DNA of 64,000 nt from positions 62,001-126,000 of the forward strand of contig MU008154.1 of NCBI GenBank assembly GCA_010909165.1. The letters are read 5' to 3'. The first letter of the stretch is position 1. Each line of letters opens with the position of its first letter. This DNA is from Anthoceros angustus. Taxonomy: Eukaryota > Plantae > Anthocerotophyta. Under the pieces are notes generated by a model. That model searched no databases, was not told where the DNA came from, and worked only from the letters and a program-made list of their open reading frames with translations. Positions 11,020 through 64,000 of the stretch are shown piece after piece. The position numbers and the translations under genes were made by a program.

Positions 11020-12400
11020 GGAGATGATGATAGAGACGCGGGGCGCGCGCCGCTTACACCGCAAACTGCACGATTTGGCGTGACTTGGTGGGAGACCATT
11101 GAAAGGCCCACCGACGGAGCTAGTCAGCTTGAGCACGGTGACGAGGCTCGTGATCGGCACACGGCATGGCGTGGTATGGGAGGTTGTCCGGAGGAGGTGT
11201 GCACGCCGATTGCCACGCACACACCCATCACCAAGACGGCTGAATGATGGAATACGATTCGTGCAGAGCAATCGGATGGAATCGAAATCCCTAGGAGGCA
11301 GTCACGGAGGCGCTTGATGCTGGAGCACATGGCACGATTTGCCGACAAGGCGATCCGCCCGGCCCAAGACACCAATGCGACACCCATGTACATGTGGCAT
11401 ATGGATTGTGTGCGGGGCCGGGCGATGTTCGCAAGGATCGCGCGGTGGAAGAAGTGATTGCGAGTTGTGATTGCACCGGTGAGCTGTGTTGCCTCGCAAT
11501 TATGACAAGATGTACCAATTCTACTTGAGTCCAAGGGGCCATAGATGGGGCAACCCATTACGCCCCCGTTGGTCCGGAGGATAACAAGCGGGAACGACGA
11601 TTTTCAACGCCTATGTGGAAGAAAGGAGGAAGTTTGGGCATCCACAATGGATTCCGACTAAGACAGAGCACAACCTAATAGAGGCAGATATGAACCGAGC
11701 GAGGCCAAGGGCACATGAAAGCAACTTCATTCGTGGCCCCTCTGTGCAAAACCAAGTAAAAGTTTGGTGCTTGGTCTGCGTTGTCCTTGTCTGCAATGAC
11801 TGCTGGTGAAGTGAGTGAATGCGGGATTGGTGCAGAGGATTGAGCATTTCTGGCGGTCCTTGGGAGAGAAGTGGGCGTTCCTCTACAAGGGGTACATGAT
11901 GGATATGGTGAGGAGCAGCGAACTGGACATCACTAACCCTTGGCACATCCATTCGCTCCACGTGACCTTCATGCCCACGATGAGGGCGGAGCTCGAGCGT
12001 TGGAGGCAGGTATGGAATAGGCACCGGTGCGGAAGATCGTGCAGCCGGCTGTGACATCCTCGCCATGTGCCCAATCGCATTCCAAGAAGAAGGTCGACTA
12101 CAAGGGTGGGTGCACACCCGCATATGAGGAGGACGATGGCGAGGAGTTCGATGTGGGTGGCCTCGATGCTAAAACGTGGCCCCGAGATGCCACCACTTGG
12201 GCATTGAATTGCCGAGGGGTGAGAAACCGCAGTCGCATGTCCATATATTGTCCGCAGTTGCAGCATTGTTGGAGGTGGAGGGCGATCGCCGCCATATGTG
12301 CAGCCATGTGGAATCGAATCGTGGGCATCGCTGGTTGTGCAGAACCGCAGATGGGGACAATGCATATGCAAAGGGCTTGAGGACATGGACTTCCTCCGGA
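11020..12400 (+). mobile_element. IS3EU/IS481-like DDE integrase-core transposase (frameshifted, one intron 11756-11835)
   Basis: Ordered motifs YDKMYQFY..QGAIDGATHY, DNKR..TIFNAY, FGHPQWI..TEHN, FIRGPSVQNQ|RIEHFW, LDITNPWHIHSLHVTFMPTMRAELERWRQVWNRHR match the eukaryotic integrase-core pattern (HGxIDG...GxSxxNQRIExxW...WNxH). Confidence 0.72.
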
Positions 12401-20300: not shown

Positions 20301-22931
20301 CCCACGCCAGCTCCTTGTGTACCTGGCCTCGACACATCATATTGGGCACCAACCAGCCTTCGGTTGCCCATGGCATCTTGTACAGGACCAGATCTACTGT
20401 CTTTATAGCTACCCATATCATGCATATCATCAACCACTAGCTCAGGATGCTCCCTCATACCCCTGGAGTTACTTGGAGGCAGCCGAGGACCAGACCCCAT
20501 GGACCCATGGTAATGATTAAAGACATCTGGAGGTGGCCCTTGGCGGTTAGGAAAACCAACATACATCCCAGGACCTCCCATTACCATGGCCCCCATCATC
20601 ATCCCCCTCTCGTCCATATGCCCAGGAGGGCCATACGCACCATCATAAGGAGGGCCTGGATACATCCCAGGTCCCAAAGGTGGTCCGGGTCTCCCCGCTC
20701 CTCCTTGCCGAGAAAGCAGCCCAGCATTTCCATACACATTTCCCACATGAGGGCCAAAGCCACCCGGTCCTCGGCCATAACCACCAGGACCAGGGCCATA
20801 CCTCTGTTGAGGGGGGAACCCAGGAGAGTCGAGCTGAAACCTTGGGGGACCATGAGGTCCATGAGGTCCTACCGGAGGTCCACCCCGACGCCAATTCTCA
20901 TCAGGACTCGCACCTGGTGAAAAGAAAACTACTGATTCATCAGGGCTGTGCATGAGCAGTTCTATGCCAACGTGCGATCCACACAACCAAATCGCACGCA
21001 CCTGGGGAGACTTCATGGCCACCATCTCTCCTCCACGAATCCACAACAGGAGGATGCCCATCATGGGAAGCAACATGCCTATGCTCTTCCCTGTGCCAGT
21101 TCCCTTCAGCTCCAGGTGGCATTCCTCCAAATGGCTCCCTTCGCCAGGTATCGAGTACTGGCCTTTCCTGGTTGCTAAAAGCAGGGCCAGAACCACGAGG
21201 ACCGTCATCTACACATGGAAGATAAGAAACAATAGAAGTCAAAAGGCAGAAATCTTGATTCAGCAGTCCATAACATCAGCTTATCCAGAAACACACCATA
21301 AGGCCCTGACAAACTTGGCGGTCTTTGTTGTTGTGAAGAAAACAGCTTCTCATCTACTGCTCTTTCAACAGTAGCAGTACCTGAAAGAAAACTTCATCAA
21401 TACCAATGGACTAAACCAGAAATCCCATCCCCACAAGCTTCCTATACCATCCCCCCTGACAAATTGACAAGTTAAAAGAAAGTGCACCTCCAGCGAACAC
21501 ATCATTCTAAACTCTTTCAACCAGTGAGCTTTCTACATCACACATGGTGCTTAAAGTTGCTAAGCGGGCCAGAAAGTGAGAGCCACTGGTGAAATTCCAG
21601 GCTTACCCTGCTGAGGACGAAGATCAGGGCTCTTCTCTGAACCTAAAGTTGGAAAGTCAAGACGAGTCAGCTGAAATGCAGTGGGCTGGTGAGAATCCCT
21701 TGCCTGAGAGAAACCGAAAATACAAGTTGTTAACTTTCCCAAGATCTCAGACGACAGACTAACTTCATAACCACCAAACAAGCAGAGCAGATGAAAAAAG
21801 ATTCATGCAGAAGATTGATCCGTACCATCTTTGTTTCTGTACCTGCCCCTCCCCATGCAGGGCCAGGTGCATTGACAGGGAAATTAGTAGACTCCCCAGG
21901 CCGAGAAACCTGTGCATGTCTTTCCTCCGCACTCCGCGGTCTTTGAAAGGATGGCTGTGTCTGTGGCTGACCGTGCAGCATGCCCTGACCATGCCCTTGT
22001 ACTCCAGAGACGGCTGCTGAACGAGAGGTTCCAGAAGCTGATGCTGGTCTTGAAGGAAGCGGACCCCATGCATTTTGAGTCAATTGGGATTCATGCATCT
22101 GTCCAATGCTCCCAGCAGAAGAGGGACGAGTTCCACTTCCAGCAGAAGACGGGCGTGATACAGCTCCACCCCATGCTGCTCCACTGCCGCCAACATTAGA
22201 TCCTTGTTTTGCTGTGGCCCCCCAGGTCCCATTGGTAAGAGGTGGAGATGAGGCTTGCGTTGCTGTTCCCCATGCATTGTTGATTGTGGGAGGAGATCGT
22301 CCAGTTGCTCCCCAGCTGACACCACCCCTACAGGAAGGAAAGGTGAAGGCTTCAGGACACACATAACGACAGATCTGCAGAAGAGGGAACTCCAGCTGCA
22401 TGGCGGGAAAAGCAGCTCACCTGGGAACTATCTCCACATTGGGATCCAACCCGCGGTTCTCAAGCCTGGGCACAAAGCCATCAAATCTTCATTGTCAGCA
22501 ACGTTGATTCAACTGAGCAGCCCATCAACAGTGGCCTTGGTGACTATCATTGTCAGATCGACCCAATACAACACTCCTTATATATGATCGTGAAACACTG
22601 ACTACGTACACACTGCCTACAAGACGCCATAGACCTGCCCTGACGAGAACCCTAAATAAATAAACAACATGATCGCCAGGCTCTCAGATTAGGGGCATGA
22701 CCTCTGACTTGGAAGATTGATGGGCTTTGGCACAGCAGGTATTCTGCCGAGTACAGTCATACCCCTCCGGACAGAGGGCCCTCTGCGGAAAAACGCCAAC
22801 AGGAAGAGCATCAGATACAAGTGGCAGTTTCGACGAAGGCATCGGATTGCTGAGGTAAGTAAAGGCTTCCATGCTCCCGTCGCCCATCGAGGGAACCGCA
22901 CTTTCACTCACCTTCTGTCCCCGCTCAACAT
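14351..22931 (-). CDS. MOS1: MODIFIER OF SNC1 1 (BAT2/PRRC2-like), multi-exon; two internal ~0.8-kb tandem duplications in this assembly
   Basis: Spliced N-terminus MLSGDR|RGPSVRRGMTVLGRIPAVPKPINLPSQR|LENRGLDPNVEIVP (exons 22931-22912, 22782-22702, 22465-22421, 22327-21826, 21703-21607), then SRPSSAGSGTRPSS, DFPTLGSEK, YDYEAQ|RAKMKEIAHQR..QKEEEERIKEQKAKAHAKLEELNRR and IWAPVR. Confidence 0.92.
14623..16220. repeat. Tandem duplication (798-bp unit) in the last MOS1 exon
   Basis: 14623-15420 and 15421-~16220 are near-identical; CCTGAG microhomology at the junctions. Confidence 0.92.
18803..20392. repeat. Tandem duplication (~790-bp unit) in a central MOS1 exon
   Basis: ACAGGACCAGA at 18803, 19595 and 20382 bounds two near-identical copies. 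Confidence 0.92.
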
Positions 22932-26784: not shown

Positions 26785-29700
26785 TGGTATCAGAGCAATG
26801 ATCCGCCATGGACTTGCTTGCTATTTCTTCTTTGCTTCTGTTGATAAAGAGCAAAGTAGATAGCATATCATATTAGATTTGTAGTGTTTCTGAAGAGTAT
26901 GATGGGCTCCAATGGTCCTAGACTACGTTCTTAGAAATCATTAGAAAATATGGAAGAAAATTCACTTCACTAGATCATTGAGGGTTTTTAAGAATTCAAG
27001 ATATAAGTCTTAGGTGGTTGTGAATATTCTACATTTAGAAAGAAGAGTTTCTGGAGAGCACGACGGGCTGCAAGAGCTCTAGATGTGTATCTCGTTTTAA
27101 AAGAACAAAAAATAAAACAACATGAACCATGAGAACCCTATGTCAGGCCCCATGTGTTGGGCGCTTAATCGTGGAGTTCTGATGGAGTGGAGTGTATGTG
27201 CACCGACCCGCTGAGGACAATTACAGGGAAGGCGAGTTTGTATATAAAACCTTCTTTATCACTCAACCCTGGTTCATTCGGGACAAGGATCACGGTGATT
27301 ACCCCAATTCAACCAGCCTACGGGTTCTTGAGGCAGTTGCGCCCGTCTCTCACACACAATTCAAGTGATGGGAGCCTAGACTCTGGTGTGCAGGGCTCGA
27401 TTCACGAGCGCTTTAATAAGTGTGTTGTCGCGAGGAGGCGGCTGCGGCCGAACGGTGCCCGTGTCAATCGTTGCACTTCATTTGGCACCACCATGTGAAC
27501 ACAGTTTCACAGACTGCAACCGGGTTTCCCTTCGCACCTTTCACACCTCACCTTCACCGCCTCTTTAGGGCCTCTGTTTTTTTTTCCAAATAACTTATGC
27601 TGTTGGTGGTTGCAAAATCAACCTCGTGGGCAATATTTACTAAAGCTCTAGATCACATGAGAAGAGTAGCTTGCTATTTTCGACAAACTTATTTTGGTGA
27701 CCGGAGATGGTTGCGACAAGCTATGTCCGCTGAAGACTAAACCTCTAGGAAATCTATTTGAATAAGAATTTGATTAGTGTGCGTCAACGCCGTTTCTTGT
27801 GAGTAGGTCCAAGTCTACAAGACCAAGATTGGGTTGAGGAGCAACGCCGGTTTTGAGGTGTCCAAGCCCCGCAAGATCAAAGTCAAAATTGCAAATTGTT
27901 TTTGCTACCCTTTGAAGATACATTTTCTCTAACGAGTGATCTAGTCGAAATATCATAATATTTCAGCCGCATCTACGTGAAAGCTCTTAAGGATGGATGC
28001 TCAACCACCACCAACACCAACAATCTTCAACATGATGAGCGTCATTTCGACTTCAAGGAGAAGGATCGCCGACGGCACAAAATTCAGTATGGTCTGCCGA
28101 ATGAAGATCGCTGAATACTCAGATCCTTCCCGATTGTCGGTCTTCTGTTCGTCCTTTATTGACTGGGTATGGTGCGACGAGCTATGCATATGCTAAAATC
28201 TCAATTAGGCGAGGGTTACCTTACACCATCTTGATGGTGCCATAACTCTGCCAAGCTTGGAAGCAACTATAATATCTATCAATCTACTCTTGTTACGGTA
28301 CGTTTGGAGTTCTACTCATTACGTATGCAACCTAACGACAGTGTTGCTCAGTACATAAGCAAGTTTAGGTATCTACAGCTCAACTTGCGGCACTGAACGG
28401 TAATCTCAATTTGATCTGCGCTCGGCTCTTAGCTAGCCTCCCGGCTAGTTATCAAACCTTTGTCTCGTCCAGAACGGACGGGTGAGAAATGCTCACGCAG
28501 GCGTACGGGCATGGTCACGAATATTCTTGTGTCGAAGATTGGGGCTCTCACGCAAGAGGAGGTTCAATCTGTTGGCACATCTCAACAGGGGAAAGGTCAT
28601 GTTCGTGACCAATGGTAGGTCACAACAGAATAAGAACAGAGCTCGGGAATCTTGAGTTCTTCCAAGTCTCAAGCGAGAGGACATGTCATTGGTGCCGAGC
28701 ACTGCCATTGGGAGAGAGTGTCGGAAGAAAGCAGGCTAGTGAGGCCCGCCAGAGCGAGGATGGAGAATGCTGTCTGCCTCCATAGCCAAGACCCGATTAC
28801 CTAGATCAGCCCGACCTCGTGCTCTAACCATGTGTTTGGTGGTTTCTATCTCGGATGCATGACTAATTGCTTTGGTTAGTGCACAAATCGTACGCATACA
28901 TGTTCACACATGGCGAAGATATTGTCTTCGTCGACAAGTCTTGCAAGGCGACCGTTAAACGCTTTGATTTCGGCCAGGAGATTGTCTTCTCTACACGATC
29001 TTGCATGCGGTCATCACGTCATGCCTTGTACATTTCTTTATGCATCTGTTTCACATTGTTGCCTCACTAATCTAGTGGCATCGATCTTGATAGATGGTCC
29101 ATTTAGAGGAGATCTGGCGATGCTCTTCTCCCACTTCCATGTTCGGATGCTAGGTTACACTCTTTATAATTGGCTTCTTCACCTCAAGCGATTCCTATGT
29201 TCATAGTTTACGCTCGAGAGGGGAGTTAGACAAGCCATGGCAGAGTACCAGAACTTGCTATCGGAATCATGGTGCCCTCACACGTTAGTGTACATGGCAT
29301 TCCCAAGGTACCTATGGAATAGAAAAAAGGAGTTCAACAAGCCGACTTCACTACCTCTAAAGACATGCAGATTATCTCTTTTAATTACGGTGTTGCTGCA
29401 GCAGAGGGAGTTCTACTTACGCTTCCAGAGGGTTACAATCCTGAAGCAGATGAGTGGAGTTGTTGGCAATCGGTGATGAATATGATTATTTGGCTTTCTC
29501 AGAAAAGTGGTCATTGGAATGGTAGATGAGATACTGCATTTACGTCATGATTTAGGTCGCTCATTGGTGGGGGCTATCCGCTTTTGTTCCATCACTAGGA
29601 GTTGTAAGTGCTGGTAAAGCTTACTCTTTCTCCGTCACAAGAGTGGTGTTCTTCTCCACGAGTTGCTGTACACTAGAGGCTCATTGCGAGGCAGTTCGAC

Positions 29701-29819
29701 CGACTCTAGGTGATAGCCGAATTGAGCAAGGCTAGAAGCTTGACTACAACAAGAGTGATCTCCTTTTGTTTACATGGAGCTCTTAGATAACAGCAACCCA
29801 CAACGTGTATGAGAGAGAG

Positions 29820-30028
29820 AGTTAGAAGAAAAGGCACTAATGCTTTCTGCACTCACGCTTTGTTAGTCTAACTAGGCCTTGGCTTTAAATGTAGTTAATT
29901 AACTAGAAGAAGCGAAAGGACACAACCCTTCGTAACCCTTTAAAAGCCCACCTGAACCTAAACCCCTGATTGTTGATTGTTAGTAAAGCATCCGCTTGAT
30001 GCAAGACGCCCGCATGGCATTTCTAACT
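29820..30028 (+). repeat. 3' LTR, first (indel-rich) copy
   Basis: Same LTR preceded by the PPT and followed by TGGAC flank. Confidence 0.85.
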
Positions 30029-31611
30029 TGGACTCGTACTTATTCTACTCGAATTCCACAACTCATCGCCTAAAGCGGACTTCATCATGCCTGTCCAAGT
30101 GAACCTGGGGCAGAGCTATATGCAGCCACGAACTCACGGACTGCACCACGCAACCCACGGACCTTCCATGAGGCTCCCCGAATTTGATGTCAAGGCTCTT
30201 TTAGCTAGCCTCCCGCTAGTTATCAAACCTTTGTCTCCCCAGAACTGGACGGTGAGAAATGCTCACCGGCCGCGTGGCATGGTCCCGAATATTATCAGAC
30301 AAGATCCGGAGCTCTCAAGAAGAGGAGCCTGTGTTCAATGTTGGCACATCTCAACACGGGGGGGAAAGGGTCATGTTCGTGACCAATGGTAGGTCACAAC
30401 AGAATAAGAACAGGAGCTCTCAGGAATCTTCGAGTTCTTCCAAGTCTCCTAAGCGAGAGGGGACATGTCATTGGTGCCAGATACCTGGCCATTGGGAGAG
30501 AGAGTGTCGGAAGAAACAGGCTAGTGAGGCCCGCCAGGAGCCAAGGATGGAGAATGCTGCCGTCGTCTCCATAGCCAAGACCAAGATTTAGATCAGCGCT
30601 CTAACTCGTGTGTGTTTGGTGGTTTCTATCTGCTGTGATCTGACTAATTGCTTTTGCGCGTTAGTGCCAAATCGAGCTACGCATACATGTTCACATCATG
30701 GCGAAAGATATTGTCTTCGTACGACAAGTCTTGCAAGACGACACGTTCCGCTTGATTTCGGCCAGGGAGATTGTCTTCTCTACACGATCTTGCATGCGGT
30801 CATCCCCACATGCCTTGTACATTTTCTGGTGTTGTATCCGTTTCCAGCTTGTTGCCTCACTAATCTAGTGGCATCGATCTTGATAGATGGTCCATTTAGA
30901 GGAGATCGCATCATGGCGATGCTCTTCTCCCACTTCCATGTTCGGATGCTAGTTGCACCGCCTTTATAATTGGCTTCTTCACCTCAAGCGATTCCTATGT
31001 TCATAGTTTACGCCGAGAGGGGAAGTTGAACAAGCCATGGCGAGGAGTACCAGTTGAACTTGCTATCGTAATCATGGTGCCCTCACACGGCGGTACATGG
31101 CATTCCCAAGGTACCTATGGAATAGAAAAAAGGAGTTCAACAAGCCGACTTCACTACCTCTAAAGACATGCGATTATCTCTTTTAATTACTTGTTGCTGC
31201 AGCAGGAGTTCTACTTACGCCCAGAGGGTTACAACTCAAGGTATGAGTGGAGTTGTTGGCAATCGGTGATGAATATGATTATTTGGCTTTCTCAGAAAAG
31301 TGGTCATTGGAATGGTAGACTGTAGATACTGTACGATGCTGTATGATTTAGGTCGCTCATTTGGTGGGGCTATCCGTTTTTGTTCCATCACTAGGAGTTG
31401 TAAGTCGTTGCAGAAAGCTTACTCTTTTCTGGTCACAAGAGTGGTGTTCTTCTCCACGAGTTGTCAGACACTGGTGCTCATTATGCAGGCACCACCTCTA
31501 GGTGATAGCCGAATTGAGCAAGGCTAGAAGCTTGACTACAACAAGAGTGATCTCCTTTTGTTTACATGGAGCTCTTAGATAACAGCAACCCACAACGTGT
31601 ATGAGAGAGAG

Positions 31612-31833
31612 AGTTAGAAGAAAAAGCAGACCACGTTGGTTCTGTACCACGTTTGTTAGTCTAACTAGGCCTTAGCTTTAAATGTAGTTAATTAACTAGA
31701 AGGCTAGCGAAAGGACACAACCCTTCGTAACCCTTTAAAAGCCCACCTATGAACCTAAACCTCAGTTGATTGTTTATCATTCTTAGTAAAGCATCTGCTT
31801 GATGCAAGACGCTTCCGCATGGCATTTCTAACT
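31612..31833 (+). repeat. 3' LTR, second copy (222 bp)
   Basis: Same LTR preceded by the PPT and followed by the TGGAC TSD at 31834-31838. Confidence 0.9.
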
Positions 31834-32366
31834 TGGACTCGTACTTATTCTACTCGAATTCCACAACTCATCGCCTAAACGGACTTCATCATGTCGGGTC
31901 CGGCGGAAACTGCAGAGCCTAGGCGTGTGCCACACAGCAACTCAACGGACCAGACACGCAACCCACCAGACCTTCCCATGAGGCTCCCTCAGGGTGTCTC
32001 AAAACGCTGCTTAAGGTTTGGGAGACCAGAACAGGTTTAATGACGCGGTCCTCCGTCGGTCTCCATGCGCAGCCATCACCACGCACAAACCCACCTATCT
32101 TCTAACTCACAACTCTAGACTCAGCTCAACAACAGCTCCAACACAATGCTCAGGCCCGCAGCTCCTTTCCTCCTTCTTCCACACTTCCACACAATTAGTA
32201 TCTTAAACACCAACACTTCGACGTATTCACACCTAACCGCCTTTGCTCCTTCCAACTGCTTCCCATTTCGTGAGGTAATGGCTTCCCAGCCCACCAACGG
32301 CGTCCGCCCCAGCGGCCTCCAAGGATGGTTTCCACATGGAGAGATCATCCCGAAGCGCTCTCCAAT

Positions 32367-32640
32367 CCCTACTAGAAATGGGCACCCTATGTTACACTTT
32401 ATGTTAAGATTTGGACCCCCGGATGTAACACTCATGTTGCAATTTTGGGGTCATGTAACACTTTGGGCCCCTTGTTACACTTTGGCTTGGAAACCATACC
32501 ACGGTTGTTGCAATCATGTTGCAATGGTGTTGCAATTATGTTAAGATGAAGTGAGAGGTGGTTTTGCCCTCTCTCAAAATTGCAACATGATTGCAACATC
32601 TAAAATGTTACAAGAGAGGTCTTGTAACACTTTTGGAGGC
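32367..32640. mobile_element. Left terminus of a CACTA/EnSpm-like element (CCCTACTAGAAA variant TIR plus subterminal repeats)
   Basis: CCCTACTAGAAATGGGCACCCT has the same layout as the 8612 end (CACTACTAGGAAACCGGGCCCT), followed by many direct and inverted TGTAACAC/TGTTACAC/TGTTGCAA motifs. Confidence 0.65.
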
Positions 32641-50102: not shown

Positions 50103-51599
50103 AATCTCTACGTAGTGAGAAGCCGGCACACTCAAAAGAAGAGTAATGTGAAGGACGAAATATCGGCATGAGACAATAAAAGAAGTGTGGCAGTTGGATT
50201 GAAGTCGAGGATCAAAGGCAGCTTGAGATCCTATAAGTGCTTTGGGGAGGTAGGCTTTGGGGCTAGCTGGTCGGTCTCAGTCGAGGAGGTGGTACAGAGC
50301 CAGCCCCACTTTCCGAGACAACTATGCCAAGCCTAATCATCACTTTGAAGTGTTATGACTTATTTTATATCTATGAGCGGAGGCTGCAAGGGAAGAGCGT
50401 CCGGCGGTGAGCCGCGCCCTCCCGGAAAGGCGATGCATGGGAGGTGTCTCACGTGGGGAGGTGGCCCAGCGGCCGGCGCGCCCATAGGTAGGGCGTGCAT
50501 GGGAAGGGCGTGGTAAGTAAGGCACATGAGAGGGTGCATGGAGGCTGGGTGGCCGGCGGCCATGGAGCATGGCGTGTTGGGGAAGGGGGCGCGGTGGGAG
50601 GCGGTGCCCATGGGCGAGGCATGCCATGGGAAGGAAGCTAGCCGGGCCGGGCGTCCTCTTTATGGATGCGATGTTTTGAAACTCCTTCTCTCATGCTGCA
50701 CGGATTTACACCCATTTTTCTAAAAATCTAGCGAACCTATTTTCATTCATTCGTTAAGCGTATACTATGTAAGTAGCTTCGTTTTCGAGAATATATGGAC
50801 ATGTTCAAATTACCGGCATAAAGCGTGGAGCATAGCATTACTTTGAGATTGCCTGCATTGTAAATGGAAGCCAGCGATGTTGCCTTAGTGAATATTAAGT
50901 CGGTCTACAAGTCGGTCCCAAGACGCCAGTCCGGCCCGGCGTCACCTGTGACTCAAGGAGTTATCAAGAATGAGGGTCTCCCTCGCGAGTTGAGGACCCT
51001 CAAGATCAATGATACATGATTGTTCTGAAGTCTTGAACATGACGTCTACAGCAAGAGGTTAATATACAGCCCCCTTTGGGGTGTTGCTGAAACCCCCTTG
51101 TGATACCTACTTGGTACCTAAAACACGTTTAGCAATCACGATCTCCATACATTTTGGACGTTGTATTTCGCGGCCTTTGAAGTCGCCATAAGCGATTACC
51201 CAGCTGAAGCATACACTGCGGGAATATGGGGCAGGTGCAGGCGGCTGGCTGGCATGCTGGCTAGCTCATGTCCGGGCGTAAAGGCGGACATTTTTACAAA
51301 TAATGCACATTGCAAAATATGGCGGAATCGTGGACACATGTCATAAATCTTTGAAGTGATGTGTGCTTTTGAATCCTATTACATTGAACCTGCAGGTCAC
51401 TCATGCGGGCTATTGCAGGACTCAAAAGCCCCAATGTGAAGCGAATCTAAAACTACGGCTAGGTTTCGCATCGCTCCGGTTCTTCTTCGTCCAAAAGCAT
51501 CATTCTCACCCAAAGCGTTGTCGCCGTTGTTAACCTCCGCTTGGACCTTTGACGGCGTGGGAGGTTGCCATATGGTATCCAGGCGTTTCTTTGTCCTTC

Positions 51600-54059
51600 C
51601 TCAACAATTCGCCGTTACGGTCTTCATCCTCACGGCACTCAAAGAAACAACTTGGGCCTTTGAACAATCCTTTTCACTTATACAAACCTCCTTTGCCCAG
51701 CGCGAAGGGCCTTTGCGGGGCTCAAGGTAAGCTCTTCTTACCGGAGAACCTCGTGTCGTGGATGCGTGAGATGTATCCAGCCTGCAAAGTCCTTGATGGC
51801 GATACAGTTTCTTCCACATAGCAAGGCTAATACCGTTGTGCCACTTAGGAGCATCGTCCACCACCTCTCCTTCTTTTGAGAAGGTCTTGATCAATTTCAT
51901 CATCAAAGAGGCCTTTGGTATGGGCATACCACCAACTTGTCATGGGACAAGTATTCCACCTTCTTTACCACAGTGTCATGTCCTATGACGGACCTCCCAT
52001 TGTTGAAAGTGCCATGCATGGCATTCGGCATCATCGCTCGATCCTTTGAACACCCATCCTTCAAGCCCCATCCAAGATACTCCCTTGTTTCAAATCCGCC
52101 CCTATCATTGCTCATGTTGGTTTTATCCCACGAAGACACGAGCCACCCTTCTTACACCACTGGCATCGATTCCGTCTTGTGTGGGCTTCCTCCACTCCAT
52201 GCATGACAATCATGCGGAAGTCTTCGCTGGTGGTTTTCATCATGGCCGTACTCATCATAGTCGCATCCATCCGTTTGTCCATAGGCCCAATATCAAAGCC
52301 TCTGGGCACATCCATGACAAATAGTGTGTACCTCCTCACCCGAAGGTAGCCCCGCATGTCCAGAATATCTCGCTTTTCCACTTGGTAATGAACCTCCTTC
52401 TCAGTCACAGGAACAGTAAAAATGTGCAGCCCTTCATGAAGATCTGTATCTGCCACAGCCCGCTGCTCATCTTCCAAACTCTTCCAATTATTGATCTCGA
52501 AAATGAAAATTTTGAAGTCCTCCAGTATTTTCTGCAAGTTGTCTATATCCTTCAATTGCTGCAAAGGGCAAAAGAGTATAAGTGCATACACAGCCATTGC
52601 AATGAAACATTATGCACTCCGTGGATCTCAAAGGCATGGTGGGAGGCCGGGCCGGCCGAGCCCTTGAGCAAGTCAGGTCCCCATCACATGTGGAAGTGGC
52701 CTCGGCCGGCGGCGCCCTGAAGGTTAGGGTTTCAAAAGCGAAATATCAGAGAAAAATTAAACGATGGGTAGTATGGCGCACCTTCCTAGCGAATGCGTCG
52801 GAAGCTATCATTTCGTCGGTCAAATGCAAAGGATATTCCAGCCTAACCTCTTGAATGATGAGCAGCCCAAGTGTTTAACCAGCCACTTGTATAACATGGA
52901 AACTTCTTAGTAAGGTAATCTCATCATCCATACCTTTTAGGTCGATAATACACCTTCTGTACATGTGAGTATTTGACCCACTCTCAGTGGAATCCCTTGG
53001 AACGATTTCCACGGCTTCGCTAACATATCCTTCGGCTTCACAGTATCAACAACCTTAGCCTCCTCTGGTACCTTCCGTTTGCCTTTGCCCTTCTTACTTG
53101 TTTTGGCAGGAACATGCTTCTTCTGCTCAGGCAATTCTCCAGCCTCCCATTTTGAAAATATTCGATCCACGTTGTCCCAAACCTTCCCCTCTTATTTGGC
53201 AATGCATAAGATGTGGGTCCAATTTTCCACCTTATTCTGCTTGTACACATCGTCTTCCCGACCTTCCTCGTCCTCAATCAAGCCCAATACACGGTATAGA
53301 TTGAATTTCCAATTCATGGTCATCTGGACATCATCTACTTTGGCAATAAGCAATTTCGTCCTCAAGTACGACACGCTCAATGAAGGACATCTTCTTCCTT
53401 TTGTCGACATCGTGTTGTGCAAGTACTCCATTTCGCATTTATCGCCACAATACACATGAGCTTCCACATATTGGGCGTGTTTTCCCCGAGATATATCGCC
53501 AAATGTTTCATGGCTGCAAAGTATGGTTCCACCAAGAACCCCATAACATATTTCTTCGCCCTAAACCTTTTCGGTCCAACTTGAGGTTGTCACACTTATG
53601 GTCGATCATGCAAAGGAAACCGCCCTCCTCAATCCTTCCCTTGATATTACGAGCCAAATAATTTGCCCTTATCCACCTTATCTGCGCATCACGGTGTAAT
53701 ATGGGATCTTTGGTTTCAATTCTCCAACTTCACTAATACTGTTTCCTGAACCACCTTCTTGGAGTAAGCTGAGTCTCAAATTCGTGTCAACGGGTCTGCA
53801 TCTCGGATAGCATCCTCCAGCCTTTCCTCATCTGTAAGAACATGAACAGTGGCAATGTTTTCCGGATGGTCCCCTTTCCCTTTATCCCTTTATCCCTCTT
53901 CGACTTCTTCTTCCCACTACCTGCTGCTATATCTCCACTGTTCGTCCGTTCGCTACCAGCAGAGGCATCCGTAGATATTGCCTTTCGTTTTCCACCTCGC
54001 TCCAGCACATCAATGCCCTGGCTCCTCTTCGCACCTGGTGGCCCTACTACATTATGCAA
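51600..54059 (-). CDS. ParB/Srx-like domain fused to a beta-class N4-cytosine/N6-adenine DNA methyltransferase (N6_N4_Mtase-like); frameshifted as assembled; intron 52781-52559
   Basis: YGVLGGNHTFAAMKHL (~53550-53500, read across one frameshift); motif IV-like LFVMDVPRG (~52320-52298); WDKTN...REYLGWGLK (motif VIII-like); CPYQRP.SLMMKLIKTFSKEGEVV.DA..SGTTVLALLCGRNCIAI (motifs X-I-II, ~51925-51795, across two frameshifts). Both gene ends approximate. Confidence 0.8.
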
Positions 54060-54576
54060 TGAAATATGACGAGGCAGTTATGACACGGGCATTGCTGCCC
54101 CGGGAGTGGTTGCTGCAAAAGACATCTGCAGCCATCTATGACAATCTGCACTGGCCGTGATAATCCATTAAAGACGCCCAAGGCCATGTCTTAAGTCATG
54201 ACATTTCCGCGGTTGTTGTCCCGTGGTTGCCCCCGGACCAGTTGCCAAACTCTGGTAGAGGCGTGCACCTGTTCGGTATCTCAACGGGTGCCATACCCAG
54301 GGGGATGGAGAGTGCCAACACCCATGGGATATTCTAGTGTCCTGTGGCAGTTTCTGCGGACAGCCGGGTCCGGGTGACGGGATATGGAAAGTTTACGTTG
54401 CGCTTATTTGCTGGCCGGCGTGAAGTCCGTTGTGTCCGTCTGGGCCGTGACGGACGTCCGTTGAGGCACACCCTTCGCGTGGCCGTTCTAACGGCTACCA
54501 AAGTAGGTTTACAACGGGGTGACCCCTGCGATGGAGCCATTCCTGCAAAGGCAAGCCACTCCACAGATCGGTCGGG

Positions 54577-57500
54577 ATGGAGCCTCCCCGCTCTAACCGA
54601 CAGATCCCACGAGTGCTTTGCGAATGCCCGGGTTGCGCGGGGAGCACACAGCGAATCCAAGGTGACATCGCTGCAAGGCATAGCAGGTCATGGGCGCGCC
54701 TTCTGGCGGAGGTAGGGCCTCTGCAATGGCAACTTCGTGCTCAAATTTGGGATGAATTCATTGGTAATGAGCCCATGTTGAATGTGATTGTCGCAGGCAC
54801 GGGCTGACGACCCCATTGACCAAACAGGTCTTCCTATCGCGTTAGGTGATGTTGCGCGGGCACCCGAGATGCCCACCGTCCGGACCACCGTTCCTCTACC
54901 ATTTCGGCCGAGGAGGTTCCAATCCCCCAAATTTCAATGCGACTACGGTGGATCATGACCCCATGGTTGGGAATGTGTAATAATGAGCGAGTTCTTCCCA
55001 CTTGTTCGCCGGGGAAATGGGGGATCATGGCACCCCCATTGGGCAGGAGGCGCGTATGGCCCAGGCGTTCCGCGAGCTCGTCGCGGGAGTTCCATCTGCT
55101 GCTGAGGCCAGCCTTGAAGAGGCTGCGAGGACCCCGCTTTGGAAGATCGAAGGGTGTGAGCAATCCGACCACACCCGACTGTCCGCCGTGTTGGCCCTCC
55201 TCGCCATCCAAGACCGCTACAAGGTGTCTGATGCCGGAATGACTGCAATTTTTGGGATCCTTGCGGGGGCAATCCTTCCTCGGGGGAACACTATGCCCCC
55301 TTCACGTCCGGCAGTCAAGAATATGCTCCTGCAGATGGGCAAACTTGCATCCGCATTGACGCTTGTGGGGACGCCTTCTTTTGGGGGCTATGAGGACATT
55401 GTTTGTGCGTTCTGTGGAGAACCCCGCTATCATACAGGTGCAACGGGGCAGCCAGTGCCGAGGAAGACGATGTTCTACTTCCCAGTTACGGGCGTCTTCG
55501 ACGAATGTTTGCTTGCCCAAGCATAGCGCGACAACTTACATGGTGGAAGACCCACAGGAGCACCGACGGCCAGCTCCGAATCATGGCAGACACTCCTGCT
55601 TGGAAGGCACTCGATGGGGTCGAGGGTTTCGGTGGAGAGGACCGGAATATTCGGTTTGGCATCTCAACGGACGGCTTCAATCCGTCGGGGCATCGTTCTT
55701 CATCGTATTCTATCTGGCCGGTTCTTCTTTTGATCCATAATCTCCCGCCGTGGCTTACCACAAAGATGCACAGAATTCTCATGCCAATCATTATACCCGG
55801 TCCAAAACAAGTCAAGAATATGGATGTGTACTTGGGTCCATTGATAGAGGAACTTGCCACCTTGTGGGCAGGTGTCCCTGCAGTGGACCACTCCAAGCTG
55901 GTTGGTGACCCGGGACACTTTTTTGTCCTCAGGGCTGCCTTGCTCCATGCCACATGTGATTATCCAGGTCTTGGAGCCCTATTCGGGCTCCAAGTTCGAG
56001 GATACCGATGTTGTATTGATTGTGGGCAGGAGTTACAGCCGCGGTGGTCCACCGCCTTGGAAAAGATTATTGTTGAAGGACACCGCAGGTGGTGCGCTGA
56101 CGACCAAGACCCACGTCGTCGCGAACATGTTGAGTGCTTCAACAACAGTAGTGAGATGAGACCCCCACCGCTCGAAGTCTCCGTCCCAGTTGTCATGGCC
56201 GAAATGAATGATTGGGCGAACGCCCATCCGGGAGAGCGACAAAATGCCAGGGCATGGGGCGTGAAACGAATGTCCGCTATTTTGCAGAATTTGCCATACC
56301 TGGCAAATATACCCAAATTGTGGTTGAAGGATGTGATGCATACAGAGGTGAATAACTGCCAAGCGTTTTGGAAGATATGGACTGGGCAATGGGACACCCA
56401 CAATGCAAGGGTTGATCGGATGAATTTAGACTCCAAACCATGGCTGTGGCCGGTATGGGACGATAGGGGGGAAGCTCATCTACCGGACGCGTCCTATACA
56501 CTATCCAAGGACGCCATCCAATGTGTCAAAGATGAGCTCGGCCGGATCAGGCCTCCAACAGGGTTTGGGTGTCACATCGGCGCATGTTTCTGGGGCCCAA
56601 AAGTTTGTGGCCTCAAAAGCCACGGCACCTACTCATGCGTTCCCCATCGTGTTACTACTTATTGCCCAGCCAGTATGTGATTTCGTTCGGGTAAGCTCCA
56701 TTTATCGCTGGATTTGCCAAAAGGCAATCAAACGAGGAGATTCCGATCATGGAAGTGAAGCACGATCGACCTCGAGCGATACTACCCTTCAAATCTGTGG
56801 AATCCTATGCAGCATTTGTTTGTTCACCTTATTGACGAGGTCGACGCGGCACGTGCCCGATGGATGTACCCTATCAGCGCCACATCCATGTACTTAGCGA
56901 TCAATCCGCGCGCGGGCCGGGCGATATGCCACATCTTGCTTGGCAATGGAGAGCTCGTTTTACGCCAGCTACCTTGGCGGAACGGACCAAGCTCACCACC
57001 AAATGGCGAGGCTCGGCGGTGAGCGACCAATTGGCAAAGCCAAGCCAAAGCGGGTCACGGATATGAGTTAAAGCAGTTGCATTGGCACTTCTTGTTGCAT
57101 GAGAGCCAATCGGAGTTCCTTGCGGCGGGACACCCTCGTGCTACATTTCTAACATGGCTAGAATCCGGTATTCGTCGCAAGGAATGGTCGAATCTATCCC
57201 AATACGCGGACATCCGGGCTATTGTCAATGGCCCAAAGCAGGTAGTGAGGTCATACGGGGCTGAAACAATGGGATGGCATTTCCGCGCGATGAAGCGATG
57301 CATCCCGAAAAGTATCACAGATAGTTGGGTATTTGGGACGTTCGACATGGCTGACCCGTCGGCTGAAGTCAAAGATTACGGGCGTGCCCTTTGAAGGCGG
57401 TGGCTTCGCATTCGTGTTGCACATTAATTGGTTGAATGCGAGGGCCCATATCGATGGCGGCAGACATAAGCGGCTTCAACTGCCGATTCTCGTGGCTTAT

Positions 57501-57629
57501 CGCTATCGCGAGATCATCAGCAGGCCCATATACTTTTCCCGTGCACGTGAAGCCAGCGTTAACCGAGACTCGGGCCCAGTGGGGCTGGTTCATTTGCACG
57601 CCGTTCCGTCACGGATTCGCTCTGGATAG
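54577..57629 (+). mobile_element. CACTA TnpD/Tnp2 transposase (transposase-associated Zn motif, Transposase_21, DUF4218, DUF4216), frameshifted
   Basis: CECPGC...RH; ILPRGNTMP; CAFCGEPRY; ADTPAWKALD; RNIRFGISTDGFNP; SYSIWPVLLLIHNLPPW; IIPGPKQVKNMDVYLGPLIEELATLW; CDYPG; LPY..DVMHTEVN; GLKSH; HLIDEV..ARWMYP. Confidence 0.92.
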
Positions 57630-57833
57630 AGATGACGACCACGGTTGTTTGTCAACAGATAGGGCATCTCATGATCGGGGCGGCCGTCCCCGAATTTCAC
57701 GATGGCGCCAACCGGGCTCTTTTGGGATGGCAAACATCCCAATATAACACGATAATCCATCACACGGTCTTCAAACACTAGGCCTCAACACACAATCATG
57801 TTCCAATTGTTCAAGCTACATTGTGCTCGCCGA

Positions 57834-59023
57834 CTATTCTAAGTGGACAGAGCGGCACGTCCGATCCAAGTACATTGGGCCCATAAGCGATGGGTTCAAG
57901 CAGGGCTTGCTAGCCTCTACCCACATCGCAACCAAGAAGTCGGAGCTCCCAAACGCCCTGCGCACTGCCACCTCCAAAGGATGGTCCAACGAGGATGGAC
58001 GAAGAATAGCGCAAACACCGGGCCAGCAACAAGGGCATGGTGCTGCCGCCCACCCATGTAGTGGCAGCACTTCACAATTAACTTGCATGCCTCAAGCACT
58101 TGGAAGATGTGCTCGTCATTCATCATGAAGTCCGTAAATGCTACAAAGTGGTGCCTTCCCTCGTACACGAACGGGAGCTTATGAATGTAGCCCACAGACC
58201 ACTGCCGCTCCACCACCTTCCTGAAGATCGCCATTTTCCCATCGCCAGCCGCACGCGGTACAACCCTCTCAGCGCCCGCTGCACACCCACAAGGTCGGTA
58301 GCTGGAGTCCGGTCCGCTCACGTTCCGCTGGAGCAGTTTGCCACCATTTTCTGTGGGAATCAACCAGCGGAGGTCTTTCTCCATTGCATCCCAGCGGTGG
58401 CCGTGTAGCATCTGCGGGATCGGGCCATCGGCGAACACCAGATCCCTCTCCAAGACACGGACGTCAAAGTGAGACACGAGAAGGAAGCAAGTGAAAAGCA
58501 AAGACAAATCGACTGTCCCGACCTCGACAACGAGGGAGCAGGCTTTCAAGTGAGACAGCTTCAGCATCTCATTCAAGATGTCCACCAGCAAGGCCCCGAT
58601 TTCTTTTGCCCTTTCAAGTGCCCCGCTCCCCCGGTTGGGATGTGCGCCAACGAGCCATGGTTTGGGGCCATCCCACTTGTCTTTTCCACCCACCACCCAA
58701 GGCATCTGCAAAGTCTCCCAATGAAACTCTGGATCACCTGTGGTAATGCCGGCGGGCTCCACGAGCTGCATCTTCCAGCACCGACGAGGCTCGAAGGGGA
58801 AGGGTCCACATCCTATGACGGAAAACCACGCCAGAAGTCTCCGTAGGAATGGAGGAATATGGTCCCATGACCATATTGGCGCCGGCAACCGCGCATCCAA
58901 CATCCGGGCTCGACGCTGCGTCAAACCCACGAGCACAGGATCTTCAGGCGGCGATGGCGTCCCAGGGCACGATAAAGAATCTGACCACGAGTTGCCACAG
59001 TCTTCTAGAGTGCCATGGACCAA
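57834..59023 (-). CDS. Unknown transposon-associated gene family X, copy 2 (368-aa ORF, probable frameshift near the C-terminus)
   Basis: Long ORF convergent with TnpD; 25/43 identical residues to copy 1 in the C-terminal block; alternative-frame tail PLEVAVRR matches copy 1 PLRIEVRQ. Confidence 0.72.
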
Positions 59024-59199
59024 GATGTTTTAATCGTCGTCGTCCGACATCGCCGTGGCGAGTCGAGCTCGAAAAGCGAGGCGGAGATGGGGAACTTAGG
59101 AACCAGCAGCAACACTAAAGTGCATACATGTTTGCAGCTCGCAATTTTGAGCGTGGTGAACGCCGCTCGGATGGCACCGCGCGATGCGAGGCGTAAAAT

Positions 59200-59350
59200 C
59201 GCCGCACCGTGGAGGCCGTGCGGGGCGTGGGCGTGTGGGTGAGAGTGGTATTCATGCTCTGTCCACCGTGGAGGACTCGTCTGCGGGCCGCGTGTCAGGT
59301 GAGGCGTGGTATTCATGCCCTGTCCACCGTGGAGGACTCGTCTGCCGGGC
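59200..59350. repeat. ~60-bp tandem repeat upstream of gene X copy 2
   Basis: GTGGTATTCATGC(T/C)CTGTCCACCGTGGAGGACTCGTCTGC at ~59245 and ~59305, with a partial CACCGTGGAGG at 59206. Confidence 0.85.
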
Positions 59351-62300
59351 CCAGTGCGATCAAGGCAGCGTCGGCGGGGTCAACATTGGCTGGGCTCATA
59401 AAACGTCTTGTCACATCATGCGGCCGAGCGTGAGTACGTTATACAGTGCTCAATGACTCCGGACACCGAGCGCGATCCAGAGCACCGTGCCGACACACTG
59501 CTAGCGATTTGGACAATGTCGGGGCGCTGTCCGGCAAAGGGGCACAAGTGAGACATCGCGCAGTAATGGACCCCCACCGGTTTCGCCATGCATTGGCCCG
59601 ACAATGAAGTGGGCGGGGTCGGTCGTGATCAGCGGGCGAGTCCTACACCACTACGGGCGGTGTCGTGTCCCGATGGTGGAAGTAGCCACACCACAAGCTA
59701 GTTGCCACTATCGAGGCGATGAAACAAATGTGCCGGAGGGAGGCTCTTGATAGTAGGCATGATGTGATGGTGTGGTTTAGGAGGTTTGGCTGCATGGATT
59801 GCGTATATTTGAATTTGTATACGCACGAGGTGATGCCGATCATAAGGTGTCCACGTTGCGACCACCTTGGGCCGACGGTCCCATGGTCCCCCAAGGACCC
59901 TTAGACTGTGTAAATCCCATATTGTTGCTCGTCGCATCAAGCTTGAAGTCCATGGACCTTGAGCGCAATGAATTATCCGTAACTAGCCAGTGGTTTTGGA
60001 ATCCGTCAAGGCGCATGTCGGGGTGGGGCGGGGCGTTTTTTATCGCCCAAAGCAGTAGCGATCTTGTTGCATGCCATGTAAATAGCGATTTAATGAGTGG
60101 TCATCCATATCTTACTGCGGCACCACAGCGTATGCACCTTGCGATGGCCGGCCCTTGCTCTCCGGGGGTGGCATGGGAGATGGGGGATAGCGAACTGTTG
60201 GCGGCGTTTGCTCTAAGCATAGCGGACCCGTGCCCAAGCGTTCGCTGAGCTTCCGACTCCAACGAGGCGGAGGGCGAGCATGGGTTTGAAGAAGGATTGA
60301 GCCTACTGGCGGAGGCGGGACGGGGAGGCGGCGGTGAGGCGTCGCTTCATTGTCGCAGGCGGACTCTACATCCATTACGTCGTGGGCATGACACCTTCCG
60401 CGGGGTGGTGGCGTCAGCAGTACCCGCTCTGCACTGCGGATTAGGGCAGTACAACCAGCTGGGGAGAGGGAAGCTACACATCGGTGGGGAAGACAGCCCC
60501 GGTGGTTTGGAGCCCATACAGGAGGGTTCGAATCGGGCTGCCACCGGACCGGTTTCAGGACTGGGAAAGGATGAGGTGTGCATGCTGGACCGGGAATCCC
60601 AACCTGACGTCATGTCCACATGGCTGCCCAATGACACCACCGATTGCCCCGGCTCGGGCGCGGGCAAAGATGTTGGAGCACCAATCGTCACGCCGCCGCG
60701 GTCAAGTGTGGTGGTGGAATTGGGTTCGGGAAGTCATGCCGCAACTGAACCATGCCATGGTCGGCCCGGGTACTCTGGCGGTGGAAGTACTGCCCGCCGA
60801 TCCTGTAGGCGGAAACAGGTAGGGTGGTTTGAAAAGGTTGATGGCGGGTGTGCATGCTCTTGTGGAATAGTGCTATTGTTGCAATTCCTCCCCAATCGCA
60901 TTCATTTGTGTTGGGTTGTTGTCGCAGGCAAATCCACATCACATCCCTGGCGAGATTAGGGCCAAGCGGCCCCACTTGGGTCACCCGGCCGTTCGATAAG
61001 CCGGTACGTGGCTGGATACCCGCGATGGATTGGCGGTGGGCGGAGGGCGGGGTCGATGATGACGTGGCGGGCGATGGCGGTATGGCCGATATGATGGAGG
61101 AGGAGGACACGGACACAAAATCGTGCCCCAAATCCGAGCCAAGCCACACTCAGCGGAGAAATGGAGCGGCAGCGCCACAAAAGTGTCGGTTTGCCGAGTT
61201 GATCGAGCCACGGGCACTAGGGAGTTGTTGGCGAACTCATCGGGCATGGACACTCCAAGGTAATGGCCAGGCATCGAGGCTATGTGCGGATGTTGCGAGG
61301 CGGGCGTGCCCTGGCGGAGGTCCTTTAGGAAGGGACAAATTGTCACGGAGAAGCGGATCTGAGGAGTTGGTGGCTCTGGCGGTGTTTGAAGTGCTGGACA
61401 AAGCACCCTCCCGAGTTCTGTTGCGGCTCATAGACACGGTTGCTTTGAGAGTACCCTTCCGTGAAGGCAGGAGGTCATCGGGACCAAGTTCTCCAAGCGC
61501 ACGAGCACGATGTTACAATCACCTTAACCGAGTGAAGAAAGGGCAAGAATTACTGCTGCACGGGAAAGAGGCGGTCGGAAATTGAGGCGGAGTCCATTAC
61601 ACGACATCCGGTGGGCTGTCGAGTGGGGAGTGGGCGATAGCGTGGAAATGGAGCATGGCCGTTGCCCTCGGATGGCGCGGGCAAGGATGGAAAAACCACG
61701 CTGCCGCTGGCCATTTGGACCTTGTGTGGGCGTTTCTTGATTCGAGGGATGTATGGAGAACCACCAAGTGTGGCGAGAAATGATATGGGGAGCAAAGCAT
61801 GGGGTTGAAAAGATGGAGGTTTCTTTGGTAACTTGGTGGTGACGAGGTTTGCACTCCATAATACACTGCATGTCTGCCAGCGAGATTGAGCGCGTTTTCA
61901 CAGTATCACGGTATGGCTAACTTGCGACCTTGTGGGTTCGTGCTTAGGCGGTGGAGGAGCTCCGAGGGAGCGTGCAAGAGAGGGTGGTTTGGTCCGTAAG
62001 TGTGGGTCGAACATGGGTAGGGTACATATTTGAGACATGTCGTGCGCTCCTTGCACCTTCACGTCTGAAACTACATCCCAGGCATGCGAGCCTTGGTGAA
62101 GGAGAAGCGGTGCACTGTTCTTCTCGGGCGGTGGGGTTAAGCGGCATGGATGTATCTGCAAGAACAGTTTTTGTGGCAACACACCGCCAAGTGTCCGTTA
62201 TGGGCAGTCGCATTTTTGGAATCCACTTGATGTGCATCTTGTATTGAATATCTGGTTTTCTTATTGCGCTGGGACTATTGTGTAGGAGGAAGGAGCCGAC

Positions 62301-64000
62301 TACATGCGGAGATGCCTGCGAGGCGGATGGCGGCCAAGATCCGCCCATCCATGTCGATTATGCGCATCGGGATCTCGAGCTTGAGTGCGGTAGTAATCTC
62401 GAACACTTGCGTCACTGGCAATGGACTAGACAAATTAACTTTTCGTCACATTGAATGGTCATGTTGGTGATCTGAGGCCAAGCGGTGGTGGCGGCAGCAA
62501 TGGTCTCGATGGGCACGAGGTACCACCAAGCGGGATGTCGCAGGAGGTTTGTAGGGAAGAAGATGCAGACTTAACTCTCGTGGACAGTGTGCGAACACAC
62601 ACCACCGTTAGACACCCCAACTTGGGAGGCTTGGGAGGCTGCGGGAGGGTGAGGAGAGGAATGCGATGGCGGGTGGGGCGAGCCCGAGCTTGGGGCGCGG
62701 ATCTTGGGCGCACCACGGAAGAAAGGAAAGATGGAGGAGTCAGGGTGTGGCCGAGGTTGAAAAGGAGCAAAGCCAAGACCGGAGGGAGGCGGTGATTGAG
62801 GCGGATGGCAGTACGCCATGGTCCATGCATGTGTGTGTGAAGTGTTCCACTATCGCGGTGTGCTCACTATCGGTGTGCCACTTGGTCCATTGGGCAAGTG
62901 GTGGCAATGTCGGATGGTGAGGGCAAGTTAGAGTATCTTGTCGGGGAACTCGAATGGTATAGGACCTTCCATGATGAGACTTTCCGGATAATGGACGGTT
63001 AATTGTACAATCCTAACGCACTCTTGCTTTGCATAATCGATCTGTATTGACTGAATATTATATATAAATTTTTGGTCGAAATTTAGGTTTCTGCTGAAGC
63101 AAGCTCAAGAGGGCAAAACCCTTAATTCAAACCCGGACAACTTTATTTTGACAAGATGGAATCGCATGTTGAATCTGAGGAGGCATGCTCCGGTGCATGT
63201 ACTATATAGAGAGGTGGCAACCACTGCGATGCGATGACATTAGGAAAGGGCGCATCATTCCCATCTTTGGATCATCATGTGGCGCTACGGCGGACAATAG
63301 TCCATGCTCCGAGGCCGTTGCCGGGGTCAGGCGTGGGCCTTGGAGTATGCAGGTGTACGAGGCTGCGGATGAGCATACTTGCCGTCAGGTGGGGCGGAAA
63401 AGAAGTGAAGGAAGCGATCCCTGGGATTGGCGAGTCTGAACCGATTCTGAAGGTCCTCACCATCCCAGTTGGAGGGCTGTCATTTACTTTGCGAGCACGG
63501 TTTTAAAATGACTAGGAATAACCTGCGAAATCCAGCAGGCGCAAGTTTGTCATTCATGTAGCAATTTTATGGGTTTTCCTGTTACGAGCGTCATAAACAA
63601 TCGCATTATGTTGTAGTGTGGGGCGCCGGCGGCCCATTGCCCGGTCCCCTCCTTCTTGTTGAAGGTGCCGCGATGGGCACCGCCGGCGGCCAGGCGCCCG
63701 GTCCATCTCCACCAAAGGCGGACAAACCGGTTTGGGTTTGGGTCACCTAGGTCTTCCCCATCCGCCCGAGGCGGGCATCCGTCAAGCACCCCGATTGTCA
63801 TCCGCATCGTTGAGGACGGTGGAAACGACCAGGGAAGCCCCAATGTCTGCAAAGTTGAGAATGTCATTTGCATCCCTATCCTCATCCTGGTTGCCTGACC
63901 CCTCTCCATCTGAATGACCTAGCATGATCGGATCGGTCTATTAGCTGGTCTCTCGCTCTCCTCATGGACAATACGCTGTGTGCCTGTGATCTCAGACACC

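Follow-up and report, generated by a model that had tools for sequence, protein, structure and literature searches.

A CACTA transposon splits a ParB-like methyltransferase gene in Anthoceros angustus, very probably one transposon nested within another

The window, a stretch of 64,000 nucleotides from Anthoceros angustus, carries on its minus strand at 51.7–54.0 kb a frame-broken gene for a beta-class DNA amino-methyltransferase with a ParB-like N-terminal part. The gene is cut at 54041 by the left end of a CACTA/EnSpm element and resumes past 63618, and it therefore lies on both sides of the CACTA, outside its ends. The features of the locus are listed below.

50552–50939, no strand assigned: three palindromes of the GCCG-S-CGGC or CCGG-S-CCGG type lying downstream of the gene, probably within the host element's 3' flank
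51700–52558 (lower end approximate), minus strand: exon B, beta-class amino-methyltransferase domain with approximately 6 frameshifts, by alignment to P0007; contains the motif IV variant DVPRG (52312–52298), WDKTN, PYQRP, the SAM-loop region and GRNCIAI
52559–52781, minus strand: phase-0 GT-AG intron at a position common to the relatives, with palindromes at 52647 and 52705
52782–54041, minus strand: 3' part of exon A (low-complexity stretch, ParB-like region, helical middle region), by alignment to P0114
54039–54041, plus strand: left TGG of the 3-bp target-site duplication
54042–63618, plus strand: CACTA/EnSpm element of 9,577 bp within the methyltransferase coding frame, defined by its ends and the target duplication
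54042–54071, plus strand: left terminal inverted repeat, starting CCCTACTACATTA and matching the right end at 22/30 bases; TATGAC repeats at 54065, 54079 and 54137
54421–54520, no strand assigned: eight CCGT/ACGG words, the densest 100 nt of the window, just upstream of TnpD and inside the CACTA
54577–57650 (ends approximate), plus strand: TnpD (Transposase_21, DUF4218, DUF4216-like tail) with 6–8 frameshifts
57830–59030 (ends approximate), minus strand: second gene inside the CACTA, convergent to TnpD and homologous to a gene at 9.4–10.3 kb
63589–63618, minus strand: right terminal inverted repeat, the minus strand reading CACTACAACATAA
63619–63621, plus strand: right TGG of the target-site duplication
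63622–64000 (runs past the window edge), minus strand: what remains of the methyltransferase gene's 5' part, an acidic stretch of low complexity, with palindromes at 63625 and 63682

All of the beta-class motifs that a preliminary description of the window had read in this gene are present and in order, from DVPRG (52298–52312) through WDKTN (52117–52131), PYQRP (51909–51923), FSKEGEVVD and SGTT to GRNCIAI, albeit distributed over three frames. The accompanying VLGGNH motif is split between frames (VLGG-NH near 53539–53522), requires one extra base in an A-run near 53524, and is intact in the relatives described below. Exon A further harbors approximately 7–9 frameshifts and 1–2 in-frame stops (53192, 53776), and the loop of SAM-binding motif I (D-x-F-x-G-x-G) is broken in the window copy by two 1-nt deletions. 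The approximately 14 frameshifts of the gene prove little about decay because the assembly is indel-noisy, with 74 mismatches versus 115 gap openings between duplicated stretches of the window (1 versus 6 for Copia LTRs) and no plus-strand frame longer than 105 codons in a Copia whose LTRs are one substitution apart. In both the methyltransferase gene and TnpD, deletions account for most of the breaks and stops are few, and CpG depletion is no different from that of the young Copia; given these features and the indel noise, frameshifts were rejected as an argument that the gene is dead.

A profile match, the check proposed in the preliminary description, did not emerge from the window itself, where the pieces of the gene, which are too short, gave no methyltransferase (N6_N4_Mtase) or ParB match in Pfam, PHROGs or NCBIfam. 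Both assignments are made through relatives, two of which (P0007, E 6e-7; P0108, E 7e-10) match N6_N4_Mtase (PF01555) above the Pfam cut-off. A search of representatives with exon B returned four matches, from which P0002 and P0003 led to P0006, P0007, P0008 and P0108 (Logan only); the matches P0001 and P0004 are repeat artefacts, and L006 and L007 are unrelated bacterial contigs. The contigs of the relatives derive from the runs SRR33208241 and SRR33208242, probably one organism. Metagenome and viral scans gave no match.

The relatives align in order along the window gene at approximately 25–39% identity. In frameshift-aware alignments, run per exon with the exons kept apart and no joined spliced model searched, exon A is 39% identical to P0114 over 186 columns (score 186 versus 38 ± 5 for shuffles) and exon B is 31% identical to P0007 over 247 columns (score 169 versus 35 ± 3). 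The N-terminal ParB half of exon A aligns weakly (score 51 versus a shuffle maximum of 54), and the remainder at 63622–64000 resembles the relatives' N-termini in make-up but, being of low complexity, shows no significant alignment to them. Matches of the family profile in the PDB are exclusively beta-class amino-methyltransferases (including DpnA, CcrM, RsrI, MboIIA and rotifer N4CMT), the match to the rotifer N4CMT structures 8s9m/8s9n being weak (E 0.004). Phage DNA methylases match the family at E values down to 2e-6 among the matches listed, and hhalign gives 97.5% to phage-type beta-class members over 55 columns. Significant alignment to known methyltransferases is confined to the C-terminal SAM-binding part. 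As judged from these alignments, the window gene is a genuine beta-class amino-methyltransferase homologue, with collinear relatives in two sequencing runs.

The GT-AG intron proposed earlier at 52781–52559 is borne out by the relatives. L002 and L008 are spliced forms of L001 and L004, respectively, and differ from them by exactly one intron, the protein position and phase of which match those of the phase-0 window intron; these differences indicate that the intron is real and that family members are transcribed. The GT-AG intron, along with the CACTA and Copia elements of the window, also marks the host as a plant-type eukaryote. Comparison of the relatives gave pN values of 0.27–0.34 and pS values of 0.75–0.78, with two out-of-frame rows (8 and 10 codons) left out of the dN/dS analysis. 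Synonymous sites are saturated and replacement sites are not, consistent with purifying selection. The relatives are also multicopy and diverged within one sample.

Assignment of the N-terminal part as ParB-like is weaker than that of the methyltransferase and is based on the GGNH motif, which is present in the relatives, and on look-alikes in the Atlas, where the region from one relative resembles unnamed eukaryotic and DUF3723 clusters (0.95–0.97) as well as a ParB_N cluster (0.92). The same region of the relatives found no match in Pfam, and AlphaFold models of relatives were too poor (pLDDT 37 and 49), with the fold search returning nothing. The ParB-amino-methyltransferase fusion claimed for this gene is thus upheld for its methyltransferase half through the PF01555 matches of the relatives, and its other half is more cautiously described as ParB-like.

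The distribution of palindromes suggests a role for this part. Eight copies of CCGG-S-CCGG or GCCG-S-CGGC occur in the window. The 9.6-kb CACTA contains none of them; seven fall in the 4-kb outer part, distributed among the intron, the gene's 3' flank and its 5' remainder past the CACTA. Because the motif was picked post hoc, the count is taken as supporting only. Element-specific palindromes of 16 bp are likewise found in the relatives, where they lie in the spacer, in the 3' flank and in the conserved intron. From this placement, we consider it somewhat probable that such element-specific palindromes, inside the intron and flanking the gene, are bound by the ParB-like part that the gene itself encodes.

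The inverted ends of the inner element agree at 22 of 30 bases, the best plus-strand match in the 64 kb (next best, 18/30), with 0.002 such matches expected by chance per strand and 3e-5 when the duplication is included. Of the top matches, only that at 54042 comes directly after a TGG, the three bases that also follow 63618; a degenerate end pattern is found at 54042 and 63600–63618 only, and TATGAC repeats are present immediately within each end. The ends are imperfect (10/13) and the left end starts with CCCTA, which is overlooked by end searches for exact CACTA or with up to two mismatches. Within the element, TnpD matches Transposase_21 at E 1e-50 (frame 55394–56677), followed by a DUF4218 piece (E 1e-5), and contains no in-frame stop in approximately 580 aligned codons. 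Its DDE residues are intact at STDG and CDYPG, while a 1-nt deletion coincides with the Glu position that follows WMYPI. TnpD is 27–47% identical to its database matches and occupies a branch of length 2.9 with no close kin in a quick-method tree. The CCGT/ACGG cluster upstream probably represents promoter or subterminal motifs. The convergent gene behind TnpD is 38% identical over 233 columns to the gene at 9.4–10.3 kb (score 183 versus 49 ± 6), and pieces of 57.7–64 kb, where frames are broken, gave no Pfam match to TnpA on either strand.

When the CACTA was removed in a script, 183 stop-free minus-strand codons spanned the emptied site. The paired ends, the TGG duplication and the frame across this site indicate that the CACTA inserted into the coding region of the gene, and the locus very probably comprises two nested transposons, a 9.6-kb CACTA within the methyltransferase gene of an outer element. 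The preliminary description had TnpD diverging from the methyltransferase gene approximately 500 bp away. TnpD is real and likely starts near 54577, approximately 535 nt from the frame break, but the two do not form a true head-to-head pair, the gene being cut at 54041; their arrangement is an accident of the opposite orientation in which the CACTA inserted.

The identity of the outer element is indicated by the relatives. The gene of L005 lies head-to-head with a DUF7869 (Sola1-type) transposase (E 1.7e-49), and that of L001 faces a divergent, non-TnpD gene without a Pfam match, which we take to resemble the N-terminal half of a DUF7869-type transposase. A Sola1-type transposase, different from TnpD, is found opposite the gene at L005 and likely also at L001. 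The window shares with these relatives the combination of ParB-like and methyltransferase parts in one spliced gene with palindromes in its intron and flanks. No trace of DUF7869 is present in the 64-kb window, and the outer element is most likely Sola1-type, as extrapolated from relatives of this degree of divergence, with its transposase expected beyond 64000 and one of its ends lying outside the window. No Sola1 methyltransferase of a land plant emerged from a literature search.

The history of the locus may be reconstructed as follows. An outer transposon, with a Sola1-type transposase that would lie beyond 64000, appears by homology to have carried a spliced accessory gene in which a ParB-like region is fused to a beta-class DNA amino-methyltransferase fold. 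A CACTA later inserted into the N-terminal coding stretch of this gene, leaving the observed TGG duplication and, in its opposite orientation, placing the TnpD start approximately 0.5 kb from the cut so as to mimic a head-to-head pair. The in-frame site implies that the window copy was broken by the insertion, and a full protein could be produced from it only if the CACTA were spliced out. For intact members of the family, self-recognition is the likeliest function, in which the ParB-like part would bind the element's own palindromes and the SAM-binding domain would mark or shield the element's DNA from host silencing.

These findings bear directly on whether the ParB-methyltransferase gene could instead be the cargo of a CACTA family, which would have taken it up head-to-head with TnpD and would use it for self-marking or as a substitute for TnpA. 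The spacing of approximately 0.5 kb does resemble that of the head-to-head relatives, no TnpA is found on the TnpD strand, and DNA-modifying accessory genes switch transposon superfamilies, including EnSpm/Plavaka (10.1101/2025.02.11.637652; PMC12730594). However, a CACTA end separates the two genes, its partner end and the 3-bp duplication lie 9.6 kb away, the gene's frame continues past that far end, and the palindromes avoid the CACTA, leaving capture as cargo scarcely credible. A methylase-carrying CACTA is refuted at this locus, and a cassette swap of the methyltransferase gene into a CACTA is ruled out by the paired ends at 54042/63618. What endures of the original proposal, that a transposon here carries its own amino-methyltransferase, is that such genes do ride DNA transposons (L005; PMC12477816), the CACTA not being the carrier.

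Nor does the gene have the appearance of one that the host acquired from bacteria or phage, in the manner of Marchantia DN4MT1 or rotifer N4CMT, and that a CACTA hit only afterwards. The spliceosomal intron, the transcription of the relatives L002 and L008 and the weak profile match to N4CMT would suit such an origin, which is nevertheless very unlikely given a motif IV without SPPY/TSPPY, relatives that are multicopy, diverged in one sample and facing transposases, and element-specific palindromes around the gene. A variant of nesting, in which the outer element and a fixed CACTA kept transposing as one composite unit like the giant Ectocarpus elements, is improbable, if less so; nested insertions fixed among copies are reported for Ectocarpus (PMC12477816), but the insertion breaks the accessory gene, and the pairing would therefore be passive. 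Simple nesting of the CACTA within the outer element thus remains the preferred reading.

Whether intact members of the family are catalytically active hinges on motif IV, which reads DLPRG in five relatives and DVPRG in the window copy. Agreement of the five relatives dismisses the sequencing error once considered for DVPR and leaves standing both an active variant and an inactive derivative. D[LV]PR occurs in 6/6 sequences and, going by the aligned copies, D[LV]PRG is a family-wide variant of motif IV. The canonical (D/N/S)PP(Y/F/W) is absent, with the aromatic residue replaced by Arg and the second Pro kept; a model of N4CMT has the SPPY Tyr stacking on the target base (PMC10406627). Because the base-stacking aromatic is replaced by Arg, it is doubtful that the family's methyltransferase writes real 4mC/6mA on element DNA. 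The fuller proposal, that plant family members encode an active amino-methyltransferase with D[LV]PRG, steered by the ParB-like part to the intron and flank palindromes and self-writing 4mC/6mA against silencing, is more tentative still and on balance unlikely. Self-writing of this kind pertains to the family, and neither to the broken window copy nor to the CACTA.

A catalytically dead domain that serves only as a SAM-binding or DNA-binding module, which is compatible with nesting, is a serious possibility just short of probable. It is favored by the same loss of the aromatic residue in all six sequences, by the replacement of the Phe of motif I FxGxG with Cys in most relatives, and by the precedent of DIRS1, whose methyltransferase domains have been argued to be catalytically dead and only SAM- or DNA-binding (PMC4738411). 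In contrast, conservation under purifying selection is seen for the motif IV Asp and Pro and for PYQ[KR]P, as well as for the GSG loop of motif I.

At this locus, a nested insertion has imitated a head-to-head pair of transposase and cargo, which calls for caution elsewhere. If intact members methylate the DNA of their own elements, the 4mC/6mA of plant genomes would have a source in transposons, and self-marking would counter host silencing, a hypothesis that is already in print. Self-marking is made testable by two features, the D[LV]PRG motif found throughout the family and the palindromes, specific to each element, that occupy conserved places.

Comparison with known systems places both elements in context. 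The inner element resembles plant CACTA/EnSpm elements in its TnpD domains, inverted ends, 3-bp duplication and subterminal repeats, and differs from them in the long branch of its TnpD, the lack of a detected TnpA and the convergent gene after TnpD. The accessory gene shares with beta-class amino-methyltransferases (PF01555; CcrM, DpnA, RsrI, MboIIA, phage) the position of motif IV before X-I, and its relatives match both PF01555 and the structures, but here motif IV lacks the aromatic and a long eukaryotic N-terminal fusion and introns are present. Marchantia DN4MT1 and rotifer N4CMT are likewise eukaryotic beta-class amino-methyltransferases of bacterial origin; unlike the window family, they are host genes that have TSPPY/SPPY and a demonstrated 4mC activity. 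Their descriptions report no ParB fusion, and nothing points to a close relationship with the window family. In the Plavaka (EnSpm) elements of Bostrychia, PAG2 and PAG3 encode an N6 methylase-SET and a ParB-2OG oxygenase in separate genes (10.1101/2025.02.11.637652). An N6 methylase and a ParB-like domain are thus found on a DNA transposon there too, with inverted-repeat arrays beside the ParB gene and cassettes mobile between superfamilies, but they are unfused to each other and lie inside EnSpm-type elements, whereas here they are fused and outside the CACTA.

The closest parallel is Sola1-1_Ec32 of Ectocarpus, in which a 1104-aa ParB-like and N4C/N6A methyltransferase gene opposite the transposase is proposed to mark its own element; the same paper cites similar proteins on transposons of green and red algae (PMC12477816). 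[quoted passage not shown] The design of a ParB-methyltransferase on a transposon has thus already been published, and the window gene is most likely a further, broken example of such an accessory gene, in this case from a plant.

The CACTA element and a second, IS3EU-like element in the window share a possible accessory gene, which was located along with the following features:

57830-59030, minus strand: shared gene, copy 1, in the CACTA element
9430-10290, plus strand: shared gene, copy 2, in the IS3EU-like element
3581-13189: IS3EU-like element with 28-nt inverted ends beginning TATGG
8612, minus strand: further CACTA-type end within the IS3EU-like element, sequence CACTACTAGGAAA
36.0-38.9 kb, minus strand: second TnpD, 41% to the first TnpD
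32367-32630: CACTA-type end beginning CCCTACTAGAAAT, with TGTAACA/TGTTGCAA repeats
43.6-50.1 kb: Copia LTR element, LTR pair one substitution and six gaps apart
28408-31988, 3566-6491, 14619-16226 and 18793-20392: tandem near-duplicates

Sequence comparison of the two gene copies gave 38% identity, and in both elements the transposase is convergent with the gene. Each copy carries an E[IV]GT motif followed downstream by a strand-Asp-helix pattern, an arrangement reminiscent of a class I SAM-binding fold. Searches of Pfam, NCBIfam, PHROGs, PDB, and phage and plasmid sequences returned no matches to the pair, which is possibly an accessory gene travelling between transposon superfamilies. A 61-bp unit occurs twice within the CACTA element at 59245-59351, upstream of that element's copy of the gene.

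The second TnpD is far more broken than the first, with approximately 23 frameshifts and six stops relative to P0012. A partner for the CACTA-type end at 32367-32630 was looked for and not found.

Relatives of the window's methyltransferase gene, identified on contigs from two sequencing runs, have in common an additional conserved N-terminal exon domain (L001 2737-3329; L005 2462-3172; the 5' end of L008, the spliced version of L004) for which a Pfam search gave no match; its counterpart in the Anthoceros angustus genome would be expected past window position 64000. The introns and flanks of L001, L003, L004 and L005 also contain a 16-bp palindrome, CAC-N10-GTG, in a variant specific to each, with two to three copies of the contig's own variant in the conserved intron of L003, L004 and L005, and these palindromes are candidate binding sites.

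The shattered frames of the Copia element, for which an AATCT duplication is probable, show the indel noise of the assembly. Copies within the tandem near-duplicates differ mostly by gaps and are probably long-read assembly artefacts. Elsewhere, a 42-bp unit is arrayed in about 12 copies at 39.7-40.5 kb, readable on the plus strand as a 14-residue repeat. Judged by eye, two minus-strand regions appear host-like: a mitochondrial-carrier-like frame (197-694) and a large plant gene whose long frames are of low complexity (14.3-22.4 kb).

An additional copy of the left end of the IS3EU-like element lies at 5055, in a duplicated stretch. IS3EU elements have ends of the form TAYGG..CCRTA (PMC12730594), with which the ends of the 3581-13189 element agree.
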